From Octopus vulgaris (lineage: Eukaryota): a stretch of 62,000 nt of DNA. This document shows, in pieces, positions 29,456 to 57,225 of this stretch. The translations under genes and the position numbers were made by a program. The stretch lies in the NCBI GenBank assembly GCA_951406725.2, contig OX597822.1, positions 43,544,001 to 43,606,000 on the forward strand. Direction: 5' to 3'. How positions within the stretch are numbered: the stretch's first letter is position 1; every line of letters starts with the position of its first letter. The notes under the pieces are model-generated. The model was not told the origin of the DNA. It searched no databases and was given only the letters and a program-made list of their open reading frames with translations.

Positions 29456-29502
29456 AAAACTGTCCGATGAACGGCAACGGGAAACTCAGGGTAACAGGTT
29501 TT
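29456..29502 (+). ncRNA. minimal type I hammerhead-like motif, CCGAUGA core variant
   Basis: AAAACUGU-CCGAUGA-A[CG GCAA CG]G-GAA-ACUCAGGGU-A-ACAGGUUUU; predicted cut after 29493. Confidence 0.55.
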
Positions 29503-29739
29503 GTTGAATTTTCTGCTGCTTTAAATAAAGCATATTACTCTACCACTGGTATTTGAGTACTCTTTTTTCCACCTTGTTTCACATTTATGTGTTTACTCCG
29601 GTATATATATATATATATATATATATATATATATGTATATAAATGTATGTATGCATGTATGTAATGTATGTATGTATGTATGTATGCAATGTATGTATGT
29701 ATGTATGCATGTATGTATGTATGTATGTGTGTGTGTGTG

Positions 29740-29950
29740 TATGTTTGTGTGTCTGTGCTTGTCCCTGCAACATCGCTTGACAACCGATGGTGGTGAGTTT
29801 ACATCCCCGTAACTTAGCGGTTCGGCAAAAGAGACCGATAGAATAAGTACTAGGCTTACAAAGAATAAGTCCTGGAGTTGATTTGCTCGACTAAAGGCGA
29901 TGCTCCAGTATGGCCGCAATCAAATGACTGAAACAATAAAAGAAAAAGAA
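29740..29950 (+). mobile_element. SINE family A tail
   Basis: Tail motif preceded by (TA)/(TATG)/(TG) linker remnants. Confidence 0.8.
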
Positions 29951-29974
29951 ATAGCCCTGTCACAAAATTTCTTT

Positions 29975-30275
29975 CGTTTAGATGCACTGAATTCGATTCC
30001 CGGAGCGGGCTCTGTGTTGTATTCTTTAGCAAGACATTTTATTTCATATTGCTCCATTGCACTCGATTGTAGAAATGAATTGCAACGTCACTGGTGCCGA
30101 GTTGTATCGGCCTTTACCTTTCCCTTGTACAACATCAGTGGCGTGCAGAGGGAAGGTTGTATGGGCGACTGCTGGTCTTCCATAAACAATCTTGCCCGGA
30201 CCTGTGCTTCGGACGGGAACTTTCTAGGTGTAATCCTATTGTCATTCATAACCAAAAGGGTTCTTTATCCTTTTT
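29975..30275 (+). mobile_element. degenerate SINE family (Meta-domain-like), related to 35850-36175
   Basis: Shared GCAAGACA..T.ATTTCA..TTGCTCCA...GAAATGA.TTGC.ACGT.ACTGGTGCC..TGTATCGGCC motif in both copies. Confidence 0.5.
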
Positions 30276-31794
30276 ACCCTTTTAAAATGCAAGAAAGAAC
30301 AAACGTGAAGTCAGCATGGCCGGATTTGAACCTAGAGTATAAATACAGATAACTAATACAGCGTGACGTTGTCTACAGCAATCCACTGTTTGCGATGTCC
30401 CCCGATATGTACGGGTAATCCACTGGTAGTGTTAAACAATTTCGATTAGTACTGATAGGGGTAGTAAAATGTAAAAGTGGCAGTAGAAGTGTCGGTAGAG
30501 GCTATAGTAACGGAATAGCTAGTAGTAGTTGTAGTGCTAGCGATAGAGTGGAAGTATGAGTGGTAGTATTAGGGTTGTAGCTGCGGTTGTGTTGGTAATG
30601 GTAAAAGTGGTAGTAGTAATAGTGGTAGCAGCGTGTGTTTTATTACTAGTATTCATAATGGTAGTTGTAGTAGTAGCTGTCATGGGGATAATTCTTTCTA
30701 TATTCAAATCATGATATGATGGCGTTCTTTCTGCTCTCGTTCTTGCTGTTGTTGTTTTTGTTGTTGTTGTTGTTGTTTTCTGTTATTGTTGCAGTTGTCC
30801 TATCAATAGCTAGCAATTAATCTTCGGAATACTTTCTGTTGAAGACATCTTCTGATACTGCTTGTGTATACGCATGAGTCAGTATATGTGTGTATATATA
30901 TATATATATATATACGCATATATATATATGTATGTATATATTTGTATATATGCATATATATATGTGTGTATATATATATATATATATATATGTGTGTGTG
31001 TGTTGTGTATGTGTGTGTGTTGTGCGTGTTTATGGATATGTGGGTATCATCTCTCTCTTACTTGTTTCAGTCATTGGACAGCGGCCATGCTGGAGCACCG
31101 CAGTCGAGTTGAAGACATCTATCACTGCACTTCTTTTCTTCTTTTATTGTTTAGTTATGTTTAGCCTGGTAATTATTCTATTGAAATCATTTTGACAGAA
31201 GTTCTAAGTTATGAGGACGTGAACACACCAACACCGGCTGTCAAGTTGTCAAGTGGTGGTGGTAGTGAATAACTACAAAGACATGCGCGAATATCCATCT
31301 ATCTATCTATCTATCATCTATCTATCTATCTATATACAGACGACAAATTCTTTCAGTTCCTCTCTACCAAATCTTTGGTTGGCCAGGACCTTTAATAGAA
31401 AACAATTCCCCAGGGTGTTTTTCAGTGGGATTGAACCTGCAACCAGATGGAAAGGAAGCATGCTTCTTACCACAGAGCCATGAGTGCAGCGTTTATTTCT
31501 AATTTGATATTATTGTATCATTTCTTTTGCCAATCTCTCAAGCTAAAAAGACGTAAACAAACTAACACCGGTCGTCATGTAGTGAAGGTCGACAAACACA
31601 ACACACACAAACTCATATATATGATGGGCAACTGAAACATTCATGGTTTTAAGGGTATTGCAAAAAGCCTGGTTACAGGCCCAAACTTGCAACTTCTTTT
31701 TACAGGGCCTAGAAAAACTGAAGGTCCACTGCAATAAATGTGTAATTCACAGAGGGGTATATATTAAATCTTTTCTACTATAGGAACAAAACTG

Positions 31795-31980
31795 AAATTC
31801 GGGGGAGGGTTAAGTCGATTATATCGACCCCAGTACTCAAATGGTACTGAATTTATCGACCCTGAAAGAATGAAAGGTAAAGCCGACCTTGGCGGAATTT
31901 GAACTCAGAATATAGCGACAGTTGAAATGACACCAAGAATCTCGCCAGGTGTGTTAACGACTCTGCTAACTCACCGCTTG
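31795..31980 (-). mobile_element. Deu/Nin-domain SINE
   Basis: ATCGACCCTGAAAGAATGAAAGGTAAAGCCGACCTTGGCGGAATTTGAACTCAGAA. Confidence 0.75.
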
Positions 31981-54860: not shown

Positions 54861-54864
54861 ATAA

Positions 54865-55790
54865 TATGATGCACCCAGAAACATTTAAGAATCAAGATGA
54901 AGAAAGAATAATTGGATAATGAAATTCCTCAGGGAAATGGAAGGAAAAAAACAAGATCAACACTTGAGATGGCTAAGAAAAAATTGATCTGAAAAGACGC
55001 ACTGTGGCATTGATATGCAGCGCCCAGGAACAAGCTCTGAGAACTCATTACAACAAGTTCCAAATAGTTAAGAGCAGCGAATCGCCCCTTGTAGGATGTG
55101 TGGCAGGAAAAACGAAATTATCTCACATATTTTGAGTGAATGTAGGAATCCGGCCCAAAAGCAACACGAATGGAGGCACAATAACATGGCTAAGTGGCTA
55201 AGTTCGTCCACTGGAGGCTATTGAAAAGTACGGCCTGAACAGAGCACAGAAATAGTACGAACATGAACCAGAAGGAGTCACCGAGAACAATAAATATAAG
55301 ATAATGTGCGATTTTACAATCCTGTGTGACTCCCTAATTGATGGTCGGAGACTAGATATTGTTGTGGTACATAAAGGAAAAAAGGAAACCAAGATTATAG
55401 ATATTTCAGTACCTGGGAATTCACGCCTCAGTGACAAAGAACTAGAAGAGTACAGACTACTAAAAGACGAAATTGCAAGTATGAGGACTCTAAGAAGAGT
55501 GTCTATCATACCAGTAGAGGCATTCGGAGAATTGACAACCAAGTTCGAGAAATATGTCACAGAAATCAGAACTGGCATGAGAATAGAGCAAACCCTGAAA
55601 ACTACTCTGCTGGGTAAAGCTATTATTTTGAGATTGATACTTGGGTGTTGAATGTCTTCCACGATGATTCACAATCAAGTATCAAAGCATATAATATACG
55701 GAAAGAGACCGTGTGAGACCTCTGAGTGCAGACAGGTGTCCGCTCTCACAGAATCAACCAGAGAAACAGGACCTAGAACTCTGAGAAGTA
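54865..55790 (+). mobile_element. RLE-type LINE 3' fragment 5
   Basis: CSAQEQALRTHY, CRMC..EIISHILSEC, RRLDIVVV..IIDISVP, LLGKAIILR; followed by (GAT)n/(AAT)n. Confidence 0.75.
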
Positions 55791-56039
55791 AAACGATGAT
55801 GATGATGATGATGATGATGACGATGATGACGATGATGACGATGATGATGATGATAATAATGATAATGATAATAATAATAATGATAATAATAATAATAACA
55901 ATAATAAAAATAATAATGATGATGATGATAACAATAATAATAACAACAACAACAAAAACAACAACAAAAACAATAATAATATTAATAATGATAATAATAA
56001 TAATAATGATTTCAAATTTTGTCACACGGGCAGCAATTT

Positions 56040-56175
56040 TGAAGGGCGGCATGAGTCGATTAGATCGACCCCAGTAAGCAAATGGCACTTAATTTATCGA
56101 CCTTGAAAAATGGAAGGCAAAGTCAACCTTTACGGAATTTGAACTCAGAACGTAACGGCAGACGAAATGCCTCTA
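56040..56175 (-). mobile_element. Deu/Nin-domain SINE
   Basis: ATCGACCTTGAAAAATGGAAGGCAAAGTCAACC...GGAATTTGAACTCAGAACGTAACGGCAGACGAAAT. Confidence 0.7.
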
Positions 56176-56799
56176 AGTGATACATTTGACGACGCATTAG
56201 ATCACATCGTCTAGGGGTTTCCTTTGATGACATAACCAAACGAATACAAAAATCGGCACCAAATCGACTTCATGAGATATTGTCAGTTGGAATAGAGTTC
56301 ATACCGTCACGTGATAATGACCATCCATCCACCTATCTATCTATCTATCTATCTATCTATCTATCTATCTATCTATCTATCTATCTATCTATCTATCGGT
56401 CTGTCTATATATTCATCCATCCATCAGTTCCACTTCTTTTAAGTACATTTCGTTTTAAAATTAAACAAATACAGATACATTTGTACTCATAGCAACACAC
56501 ACACACACACACACACACACACACACACACACACACACACCCATACATACTCACCCATAAACATACAAATAAAAGTGCATACATTTTCACATGCTAACGA
56601 TTCTGCCAACTCGCAACCACTTAGGCAAATTGCAAGCGCTATTGGGCGGGGCGTATAGGTGGTTAGTAAAAGCTATCGACCCCATCGGTTAGATCACTTG
56701 TGGAATAAACCACTATATTTTGTATGTATGTATATATATATATATATATATATATATATATATATATAGAGAGAGAGAGAGAGAGAGAGATTTGTAAAG

Positions 56800-57225
56800 T
56801 AACGATTGTTTGCGAACCTGATGTGGCAGCCCTATTTTGGGGCGAATGCTACTGTTGTTTAGTCCCAGGAGACATCGACTCCAGCTGGCTATACGACACA
56901 CTATCTGTGTCTCTATATTTTCGAACAAGAGAGGTATACCCCCCACCCAGCACAAAGCAGTATCGTACGGTTTCAGACGAAAAGTTATTCAGTTCCGACG
57001 AAGAGAACACCCCCTGAAACTGTACGGTCAACAAATATTGCTTTGTTCTGGGATGGGGTGCTAATCTTCCCTTTTAGAAAATATGAGGACATAGACCATG
57101 TGTCGTATAGACAGCTGGAGACGATTTTTCGGTGGGCTAAAGAACAGTAGCAATCGCGCCAATGTAGGACTGCCACATCAGGTTGGCAATAAGGTTTGTA
57201 ACTTAATATCACTCGTTGAGAGATT
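56800..57225. mobile_element. diverged head-to-head inverted element with hammerhead-like motif
   Basis: 56810-56975 is an imperfect reverse complement of 57014-57190 (AACCTGATGTGGCAG/CTGCCACATCAGGTT, CCAGCTG, TATACGACAC). Confidence 0.7.
56992..57032 (+). ncRNA. minimal type I hammerhead-like motif, CCGACGA core variant
   Basis: GUU-CCGACGA-AG..CU-GAA-ACUGUACGGU-C-AAC; near-palindromic helix III; GUC triplet; helix I only 3 bp. Confidence 0.45.

Follow-up and report, generated by a model that had tools for sequence, protein, structure and literature searches.

Hammerhead-ribozyme motifs with C at core position 4 in short mobile elements of the Octopus vulgaris genome

Introduction

Tandem repeats of 150–450 bp that carry type-I hammerhead ribozymes are known as retrozymes (PMC7229834), and they derive from the pseudo-long terminal repeats (pLTRs) of Penelope-like elements (PLEs) (bioRxiv 10.64898/2026.07.22.740005). 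PLE insertions are formed by partial tandems and an inverted 5'-truncated copy, and they show a bias towards microsatellites (PMC8557442). Here we describe hammerhead motifs in a 62,000-nt stretch of DNA from Octopus vulgaris (NCBI GenBank assembly GCA_951406725.2, contig OX597822.1, positions 43,544,001 to 43,606,000 of the forward strand), which we call the window and whose own numbering is used unless a contig is given. Eight motifs in the window, belonging to three families of short elements (A, B and C), have the core CCGANGA, with C instead of U at core position 4 (C4 and U4 in the following). A fourth family (D) is absent from the window and was found through an Rfam search of the genome (2.8 Gb in 227 contigs). 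Most hammerhead descriptors and textbooks regard U4 as invariant.

The same substitution has been described in a natural replicating RNA. According to Perreault et al. 2011 (PMC3088659), who cite Ambros and Flores 1998, a viroid with a U4C hammerhead is infectious, its ribozyme being less active in vitro and sufficient in vivo. There the change is a variant of one hammerhead, whereas in the octopus several families, with thousands of copies, were founded with it and have isogenic U4 forms beside them. A CYGANGA descriptor is also already in use, and C/T degeneracy at position 4 occurs among 1,305 predicted hammerheads of deep-sea RNA viromes (PMC13481778). Position 4 is treated as Y in that work too, but there the descriptor itself specified the Y, CUGAUGA was the core of the ribozymes assayed, the material consisted of viral metagenomes and no analysis of families or founders was made. 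Full-text literature searches returned no paper with "CCGANGA" in a hammerhead context, and nothing on cephalopod hammerhead cores beyond 235 Rfam hits counted in the giant squid. As natural U4C and Y descriptors are already known, this is not a new kind of system; we think that its interest lies mainly in the natural C4/U4 isogenic subfamilies.

Anatomy of the eight motifs

Judged from their sequence, the eight are real hammerhead-ribozyme motifs in short mobile elements:

29399-29449, minus strand: A1 hammerhead motif, left arm; strict descriptor match, core CCGAUGA at 29433-29439
29454-29504, plus strand: A1 hammerhead motif, right arm; strict descriptor match
35567-35618, minus strand: A2 hammerhead motif, left arm; core CCGACGA at 35602-35608
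35639-35689, plus strand: A2 hammerhead motif, decayed copy; core CCGACGA at 35649-35655
46434-46483, minus strand: family B hammerhead motif; strict descriptor match, core CCGACGA at 46470-46476
46843-46892, plus strand: family B hammerhead motif; core at 46850-46856, predicted cleavage between 46883 and 46884
47204-47253, plus strand: family B hammerhead motif, equal to the family consensus; strict descriptor match, CCGACGA at 47211-47217
56985-57037, plus strand: family C hammerhead motif, decayed copy; core CCGACGA at 56995-57001

The initial annotation of this DNA had placed two C4 motifs at 29.4 kb, two at 35.6 kb, three at 46–47 kb and one at 57.0 kb, with the rest of the core kept, and all eight were found where expected. 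Each of them reads C3-C4-G5-A6-N7-G8-A9, followed by helix II, G12-A13-A14, A15.1...U16.1 and H17; with respect to the standard core box CUGANGA, six of the seven positions are kept and position 4 is C in all eight. The A15.1–U16.1 pair is present in seven, the sole exception being the plus-strand copy at 35649, in which U at 15.1 gives GAAU instead of GAAA, as had been annotated. The descriptor scan and the segment table give the three-helix form of type I, with helix I open and helices II and III capped. In the consensus sequences helix I has 4–8 bp or more, helix II has 2–4 pairs plus a loop and helix III has 3–4 pairs. Every family consensus contains C3, G5, A6, G8, A9, G12, A13, A14, A15.1–U16.1, a non-G at position 17 and three pairing helices.

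The A1 motif on the plus strand is formed by helix I (AAAAAACUGU/ACAGGUUUUGU), the core CCGAUGA at 29464-29470, a helix II of A.G and CG/CG with a GCAA loop, GAA and helix III (ACUCAGGGU), with predicted cleavage after A17 (between 29493 and 29494). Its counterpart on the left arm has one G.U wobble in helix I where the right arm has G-C. In the decayed A2 copy, helix II consists of A.C and CG/CG with a GGAA loop. The A2 left arm has a perfect 8-bp helix I and a GUC cleavage triplet, and its helix II is weakened through private changes (ACGAGAACAU); in the A2 family consensus A15.1 is present and the 10.1–11.1 pair is A-U. The consensus-like copy of family B at 47204-47253 has helix I CCACACG/CGUGUGG extended by 9 bp, helix II of U.U and AGG/CCU with the loop CAAUACA, GAA and a helix III given by ACCAUGGU, cleavage being predicted after C17 (between 47244 and 47245). 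In the copy at 46843-46892 a private U-to-A change produces an A.A mismatch in helix II. Finally, the window copy of family C has helix II AGAG/CCCU (AGGG/CCCU in the consensus), GAA, ACUGUACGGU (ACCGUACGGU in the consensus) and C17, with a helix I that is weak in this copy and reads CACAG/CUGUG in the consensus.

These motifs share with the described metazoan type-I hammerheads (RF00163; Schistosoma Sm-alpha, newt satellite) an open helix I of ~6 bp followed by an internal loop, a helix II of 3–4 pairs with a 4–7-nt loop, GAA, a short helix III whose palindromic loop permits dimers, and GUC/GUA cleavage. Family B has the standard layout, with a 6-bp helix I, an internal loop, the 9-bp extension, four "pairs" in helix II and a palindromic helix III. 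Palindromic or near-palindromic helices III are common to the families: ACCAUGGU in B, ACCGUACGGU in the C consensus and ACUCWGAGU in A. The differences from the metazoan hammerheads are C4, the 10.1–11.1 pair (A.G, U.U or A-U instead of G-C) and the scores of A, B and C, which lie below the reportable Rfam threshold. That the pair closing helix II is often non-Watson–Crick or A-U had been pointed out by the initial annotation, and this holds: the pair is A.G in A1, U.U in B and A-U in C, and of the two A2 copies in the window one has A.C and the other A-U. It is A.A in subfamily A3, and the conserved G10.1–C11.1 pair is kept only in family D. Comparative support for the helices comes from the four families, whose helix sequences are unrelated and all pair, and from the founder changes within A, which spare pairs and core; true double-sided compensations are few because the young families are nearly identical.

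Other hammerhead-like sites in the window were rejected. The heptamer CCGATGA at 46419-46425 (plus strand), 46901-46907 (minus) and 47262-47268 (minus) is the complement of the extended helix I of family B, with GAAAC 4 nt downstream and without helix II. A U4 candidate at 45242-45295 (plus strand) has CUGAAGA, a 5-bp hairpin (GUCAC/GUGAC) and GAAA, without helix III or U16.1, and it is probably a chance or decayed hammerhead-like site.

Detection and chance expectation

The type-I descriptor consisted of a helix I of at least 4 bp, CNGANGA, at least 2 pairs in helix II, GAAA, A15.1–U16.1 with at least one more pair, and a non-G at position 17. Its strict form matches the window at 29464 (plus strand), 29439 (minus), 47211 (plus) and 46476 (minus); all four matches have C4 and none has U, A or G at this position. 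Among 300 dinucleotide-preserving shuffles there were 11 matches over all four bases, 3 of them with C, so the expectation for C4 is ~0.01 per window. The heptamer CCGANGA by itself is found 29 times in the window versus 13.7 ± 3.6 expected, with only 8 of the 29 in a hammerhead context. The remaining four motifs fail the strict descriptor because of private decay, namely the A.A in helix II at 46850 (plus), U15.1 at 35649 (plus), the weak helix II at 35602 (minus) and the weak helices I and II at 56995 (plus). A relaxed scan regains the motif at 35649; the other three still fail and are recognised through alignment to their families.

It could be argued that the motifs are chance resemblances arising from palindromic repeats with CpG-rich cores, with no hammerhead kinship. 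Rfam is silent on A, B and C, palindromes double each motif and the core was originally sought by eye, all of which would fit such an origin. On the other hand, the four descriptor matches come from two independent families and face a null of 0.01 per window, and family A includes a subfamily with the fully canonical core CUGAUGA (A3). Loop 2 of family B, CAAUACA, resembles the loop CAAUUAUA of the best canonical Rfam match of this genome (45.5 bits). Moreover, the substitution pattern obeys hammerhead rules, and the tandem and inverted context in (TA)n matches that of known hammerhead-bearing elements. We consider this explanation effectively refuted and assign it hardly any probability.

No hammerhead match in the window reaches the gathering threshold of Rfam (RF00163, 34 bits). 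At E ≤ 10 over 29 kb, no hammerhead appears among the 150 of 177 matches listed, and at E ≤ 10 on slices of 901 and 79 nt no hammerhead model reports families A, B or C. The matches obtained (MIR395, mir-297, MIR8562) come from generic hairpin or low-complexity microRNA models and are regarded as spurious. In the genome, the Rfam search gave 8 canonical hammerhead matches above the cut-off, the best one being that of 45.5 bits. The initial annotation had predicted that standard searches would miss the C4 motifs. This is true of Rfam for A, B and C, but C4 is not the sole reason, as a C4 copy of family D elsewhere in the genome scores 34.0 bits against the RF00163 cut-off of 34, and descriptors with Y exist. 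The odd 10.1–11.1 pairs and the short helix II matter more for the missed detection.

Families A, B and C

The window elements that hold the motifs are the following:

29373-29601, plus strand: family A1 element; a 75-nt inverted left arm head-to-head with a 150-nt right arm, in (TA)n
35545-35782, plus strand: family A2 element, the older A subfamily; inverted left arm, ~20-nt spacer and right arm, in AT-rich microsatellite DNA
46266-47467, no strand assigned: family B insertion in (TA)n; ~1.1 inverted units (46266-46663), then ~2.2 direct 361-bp units (46670-47467)
46884-47244, plus strand: one family B monomer, from cleavage site to cleavage site as predicted; 361 nt, 46% G+C
56795-57238, plus strand: family C element, old; head-to-head, with inverted left copy 56795-56964 and right copy 56973-57238

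The three families cannot be aligned with one another, as had been judged by eye: blastn with word size 7 gives matches of at most 17 nt, the best with E 0.009. The elements at 29.4 and 35.6 kb form one family, since the window copies of A1 and A2 have 76% identity over 227 nt (blastn); their consensus sequences have ~88% identity over the element. The borders of A1, taken from the conservation profile of 30 genomic copies at 98–99% identity, are (AT)n followed by CTTTATTTAAAG on one side and ACTCCGG followed by (TA)n on the other. For A2, 19 further genomic copies were found at 88–94% identity to the window copy.

Family A was counted in the genome with the anchor-only pattern AACTGT-N21-CTCWGAGT, which leaves the core and helix II free and gives 9,308 matches, versus 17 for the reversed control. 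The haplotype tallies of A and B and the first tally of D refer to the first 100 listed places, which are a positional and not a random sample. In that of family A, T occupies position 4 in 54 places and C in the other 46, and A13, A14 and A15.1 are each kept in 100 of 100. The haplotypes are:

A3, CUGAUGA..CGA: 41 in the first 100
A1, CCGAUGA..CGG: 15 in the first 100
A2, CCGACGA..GGAA..CGU: about 20 in the first 100, decayed copies included
Intermediates, CCGACGA..GCAA..CGG and CCGAUGA..CGC/CGU: a few each in the first 100

The core of A3 is fully canonical (CUGAUGA-ACGGCAACGA-GAA-ACUCAGAGU-A-ACAGAUUUUG), and 4,124 exact copies with A17 and an intact helix I make it the largest subfamily. 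Among the multi-copy haplotypes of A, variation is confined to N4 and N7, the N of the GNRA loop, 11.1 and loop III; the few variants with 2–3 copies at CpG sites probably reflect recurrent decay or local duplication. At C3, G5, A6, G8, A9, G12, A13, A14, A15.1 and the pairs of helix II there are private changes only, in at most 7%. The apparent order of the subfamilies is A2 (88–94% identity to the window copy), A1 (98–99%) and then A3 (41 identical 35-mers among ~48 such copies); with this order, the canonical core of A3 would be derived through CpG decay. Direct neighbours of A3 lie 3,352–3,365 bp apart, for example at C1:64214590-64222070 (C1 being a contig of the genome), and there are also pairs of a minus-strand and a following plus-strand copy 0.04–5 kb apart. 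This regular spacing suggests that the hammerhead sits near the 3' end of a ~3.36-kb unit, of which the short A hairpins look like extreme 5' truncations.

In family B the inverted and direct repeats have 99% identity. The monomer has a predicted circular fold of -114.4 kcal/mol (z = -4.75 versus shuffles), in which long-range pairing lengthens helix I. Exact copies of the motif number 1,210 in the genome versus 0 in the control, in arrays of 1–12, and the first 100 of them all have C4. N7 is C or U and uniform inside each array. Over 30 loci, 96 of 102 occurrences have a motif identical to the consensus. All 15 strand flips run from minus to plus (p = 6e-5).

Family B agrees with the non-LTR retrozymes (LTR, long terminal repeat; PMC7229834; 10.64898/2026.07.22.740005) in its 361-bp units, within the range of 150–450 bp and close to the 350–390 bp of mussel retrozymes, its short, dispersed tandem arrays with one type-I hammerhead per unit, its G+C below 50%, its strongly self-paired predicted circle and its more than 1,000 copies, in a genome that has PLE-type GIY-YIG open reading frames (ORFs). 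It differs from them in its core, CCGAYGA, and in its arrays, which in 15 of 15 cases have a minus-strand block followed by a plus-strand block.

Family C has ~20 genomic copies, with 72–84% identity in the alignment. In the window element the left copy is truncated within the hammerhead and the right copy holds the whole motif. The family consensus has C4. CCGACGA is kept in 7 of ~10 forward copies, and one copy (L072) reads CTGATGA, both CpGs having decayed.

Family D and hammerheads of other organisms

The motif of family D reads GUAC-CYGAAGA-GACCCAGAACGGGUC-GAAAC-AUGU-GUY-GUAC, with the stem GACCC..GGGUC. With the core left free and every match counted (n = 93), position 4 is T in 62, C in 27, G in 3 and A in 1; in the same set C3 is changed in 14% and each other core position in 1–6%. 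The first tally had given a T:C ratio of 58:40. A tree of 45 copies sets D1 (C4 in 10 of 11; C17) apart from D2 (position 4 mixed, mostly U4; U17). A C4 clade inside D2 was rejected, as the tree does not resolve one (13 changes versus 15.2 ± 1.7 with shuffled labels) and only D1 is clearly C4. The CpG in the loop of D is CG in 65, TG in 16 and CA in 11. Neither CpG decay from a C4 ancestor nor neutral T-to-C change from a U4 ancestor is acceptable as the sole cause of the split in D, because a T:C ratio of 58:40 or 62:27 stands against 16% TG and 11% CA in the loop CpG and 1–6% change at most other core sites. Since neither process alone explains the split, both C4 and U4 founders must have been amplified.

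Family D is the textbook PLE-type motif when compared to the minimal hammerheads of PLE pseudo-LTRs (PMC4209133, PMC8557442), and all families share with these the layout of partial tandem and inverted 5'-truncated copy and the microsatellite targets. The known core variation of PLE hammerheads is a U3–A8 covariation, whereas here it is C or U at position 4, with 29–40% C in D and 100% in B.

Metagenome contigs were also scanned, with CYGANGA-GACCC-N5-GGGTC-GAAAC. Family D was absent from this collection, and the other hammerhead families found there were all U4. In one of them, which belongs to another organism (L159-L210, contigs JAAUXW/JAAUYA; UUGC-CUGAUGA-GACCCGUAAUGGGUC-GAAAC-UGCC), C4 occurs in 0 of ~45 copies. 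The abundance of C4 thus looks specific to the octopus genome. The scan also met a conserved element, CCGAAGA-GACCC..GGGTC-GAAAC-CCGG..CCGG, upstream of a site resembling a ribosome-binding site (AGGAGGAGG) and an ATG (L171, L188, L192, L197 and L207). U16.1 and H17 are not evident in it, and it may be a different, bacterial leader RNA.

Position 4 among founders

C4 is the founder (master-copy) state of A1, A2, B, C and D1, and not the result of decay in single copies. Because dispersed copies of mobile elements decay neutrally, the informative comparison is the one between founders. The consensus sequences of A1 and A2 differ at 8 places in the 55-nt motif, and none of these falls among the 29 positions that a hammerhead needs (hypergeometric p = 0.0013). 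The 8 differences are two distal bases of helix I, N7, the N of the GNRA loop, 11.1, loop III, the bulge of helix I and one indel beyond the helix. As both founders have C4 and no needed position has changed, the fold, including the catalytic bases, was kept while C4 was present. We think that this constraint is the strongest argument that the C4 motifs are not junk.

Private changes in family A affect on average 6.3% at CpG positions versus 1.2% elsewhere, and C4 has become T in ~20% of the copies of A2 age. C4 and G5 form a CpG and CpGs decay visibly here, so U4 forms arise from C4 through the commonest mutation. A loss of ~20% makes it likely that a founder line kept C4 by chance. Moreover, the free CpG formed by C7 and G8 is retained in the A2, B and C founders, which means that the retention of C4 needs tolerance and not positive selection. 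The canonical U4 sisters have been amplified at least as well, as seen for A3 and for D2. Either pyrimidine is therefore tolerated at position 4 in this genome (Y), and the data do not show C to be favoured.

The motifs of A2, B and C at 35649, 47211 and 56995 have CCGACGA in common over all seven bases, the free position 7 among them, although their helices are unrelated. This coincidence in sequence hints at a common or exchanged hammerhead module, and it leaves unproven the proposal of the initial annotation that C4 was retained independently in the three families. The same annotation regarded C4 as a functional, lineage-specific variant. The founder state, the constrained motif and the 0 of ~45 copies outside speak for part of this claim, but C4 is not a fixed signature, given that the U4 forms A3 and D2 were amplified too.

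A stronger version of the proposal is that C4 is a positively selected, lineage-specific attenuated core, acquired or retained independently in three families because slower cleavage pays. It would account for C4 in five founders despite the C-to-T bias at its CpG, and for its absence from the comparable family of another organism. However, the U4 sisters are at least as successful, the C7 CpG is retained in the same founders without any need for selection, the modest loss of C4 in copies of A2 age makes chance retention likely, and the common CCGACGA suggests one origin instead of three. We regard this version as improbable.

Mobilisation

The families lie in (TA)n in a divergent arrangement with variable outer ends; (TA)n flanks are found in A, in B and in many D copies. 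Partial tandems, an adjoining inverted 5'-truncated copy and a microsatellite target are thus all present, as in PLE insertions. At first look, a genome search for the GIY-YIG domain yielded 5,955 candidates. Scoring of 150 of them left 148 above the cut-off, and 20 have intact 781-aa frames, which suggests a young, possibly active PLE. Examples of the domain lie at C16:20838796-20839059 and at C9:44020433-44020696, the latter ~414 kb from the window. From this we infer a putative PLE partner of the motifs described here.

We think that the motifs would be type-I hammerhead modules of short non-autonomous retroelements copied by the PLE machinery of the genome. Family B would be a 361-bp tandem non-LTR retrozyme, A a head-to-head dimer made from the 3' region of the ~3.36-kb unit after extreme 5' truncation, and C an old relative. 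The older founders would have had CCGACGA, and founder lines may have drifted from CCGACGA to CCGAUGA and CUGAUGA, as C4-G5 and C7-G8 are both CpG, with C4 and U4 founders both able to amplify to thousands of copies. Selection would act on the hammerhead fold of source elements that have C4, since the other core bases and the proximal stem pairs are fixed between founders. Following the published model for retrozymes and PLEs, multimeric or read-through transcripts would fold the hammerhead, singly or as a dimer through the palindromic helix III. The RNA would be cut after H17, a host ligase would circularise the unit-length RNA, and the PLE reverse transcriptase would copy the circle into nicked (TA)n, giving the divergent arrays of inverted and tandem copies.

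Possible cleavage by the C4 form

On balance we favour, with some reserve, the view that C4 is tolerated and that the ribozyme is still sufficient, probably slower than the U4 form; cleavage by the C4 form and a circular RNA would follow from it. Besides the viroid precedent, it is helped by the fact that U10.1–U11.1 mismatches and 2-bp stems II occur in active natural ribozymes (PMC3088659), and by the conservation of the catalytic bases from founder to founder.

Several points weigh against this view. When a type III hammerhead was mutated comprehensively, low activity resulted from every change in the CUGA turn apart from the C3/G8 swap (PMC9901934), and the U4C change "considerably decreases activity in vitro" according to PMC3088659. 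The conserved G10.1–C11.1 pair is absent from families A, B and C, and no Rfam hammerhead model reports them. A transcript of the two arms of A would form a 75-bp hairpin (-134.8 kcal/mol) that outcompetes a hammerhead fold of +9.3 kcal/mol (nearest-neighbour values). No PLE ORF was found in the window or in the fetched loci, the reverse transcriptases of the window being only those of long interspersed nuclear elements (LINEs) with an endonuclease of the apurinic/apyrimidinic type (APE). Finally, there are PLE clades that proliferate well although they have no hammerhead (PMC8557442), and cleavage may therefore be unnecessary.

From these points a different explanation can be built, in which the C4 motifs are dead or nearly so and the fold is kept for a role free of cleavage, for example as a structural tag close to the 3' region of the template that the PLE reverse transcriptase or endonuclease recognises, or just rides along. 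The weakness of U4C and of other CUGA-turn mutants in vitro would agree with it, and so would the hairpin of family A, which would sequester the motif, and the equal amplification of C4 and U4 subfamilies, as expected if the catalytic rate is irrelevant. The great success of hammerhead-less PLE clades points the same way, hammerheads being perhaps mere parasites of PLEs according to the authors of that work (PMC8557442). Nevertheless, the positions that do not vary between founders are the catalytic ones (G5, A6, G8, A9, G12, A13, A14, A15.1–U16.1, non-G 17) and not the helices alone, and a purely structural tag would not need all of them; the viroid U4C variant is also reported to be active in vivo (PMC3088659). 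We hold this explanation to be possible but doubtful.

A related idea would be that the C4 cores are crippled while the architecture, including the catalytic bases, is selected for a second, cleavage-independent role, such as a fold that the PLE enzyme recognises on its template. This seems unlikely to us. If it were true, the isogenic pairs A1/A3 and D1/D2 would test whether catalysis matters for this kind of retrotransposition.

Returning to a tolerated C4 with a sufficient ribozyme, the same natural matched pairs allow measuring the contribution of U4 in vivo. If the C4 forms do not cleave, the elements can spread without catalysis; if they do, the core consensus now accepted is narrower than it should be. 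Either outcome bears on what hammerheads do for PLEs and retrozymes. The genome contains ~5,500 or more motifs with a C4 founder (~46% of 9,300 in A, all ~1,200 in B and parts of C and D). Hammerhead censuses of cephalopod-like genomes, and perhaps of other invertebrate genomes, will thus be too low unless position 4 and the 10.1–11.1 pair are relaxed.

Other features of the window

Three LINE copies with APE endonuclease, reverse transcriptase and zf-RVT domains are present on the plus strand:

14543-19419, plus strand: LINE copy
36339-39739, plus strand: LINE copy
57207-59176, plus strand: LINE copy

The last two lie just downstream of the A2 and C elements, without shared sequence. That the hammerheads might be 5' parts of these adjoining LINEs (36.3 and 57.2 kb) was considered and rejected, as the similarity of family C ends at 57238 and no unit matches a LINE.

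At 43990-44375 (plus strand) there is a degenerate tandem array with a 14-nt unit (about AAAGATCAAAAGYT), the source of several CTGANGA heptamer matches. The hairpins at 29406-29497 (family A) and 46537-46789 (the inverted junction of family B) resemble plant microRNA precursors, below the thresholds of the respective models (MIR395, 51 bits; MIR8562, 119 bits), and such hairpins could feed small-RNA pathways.

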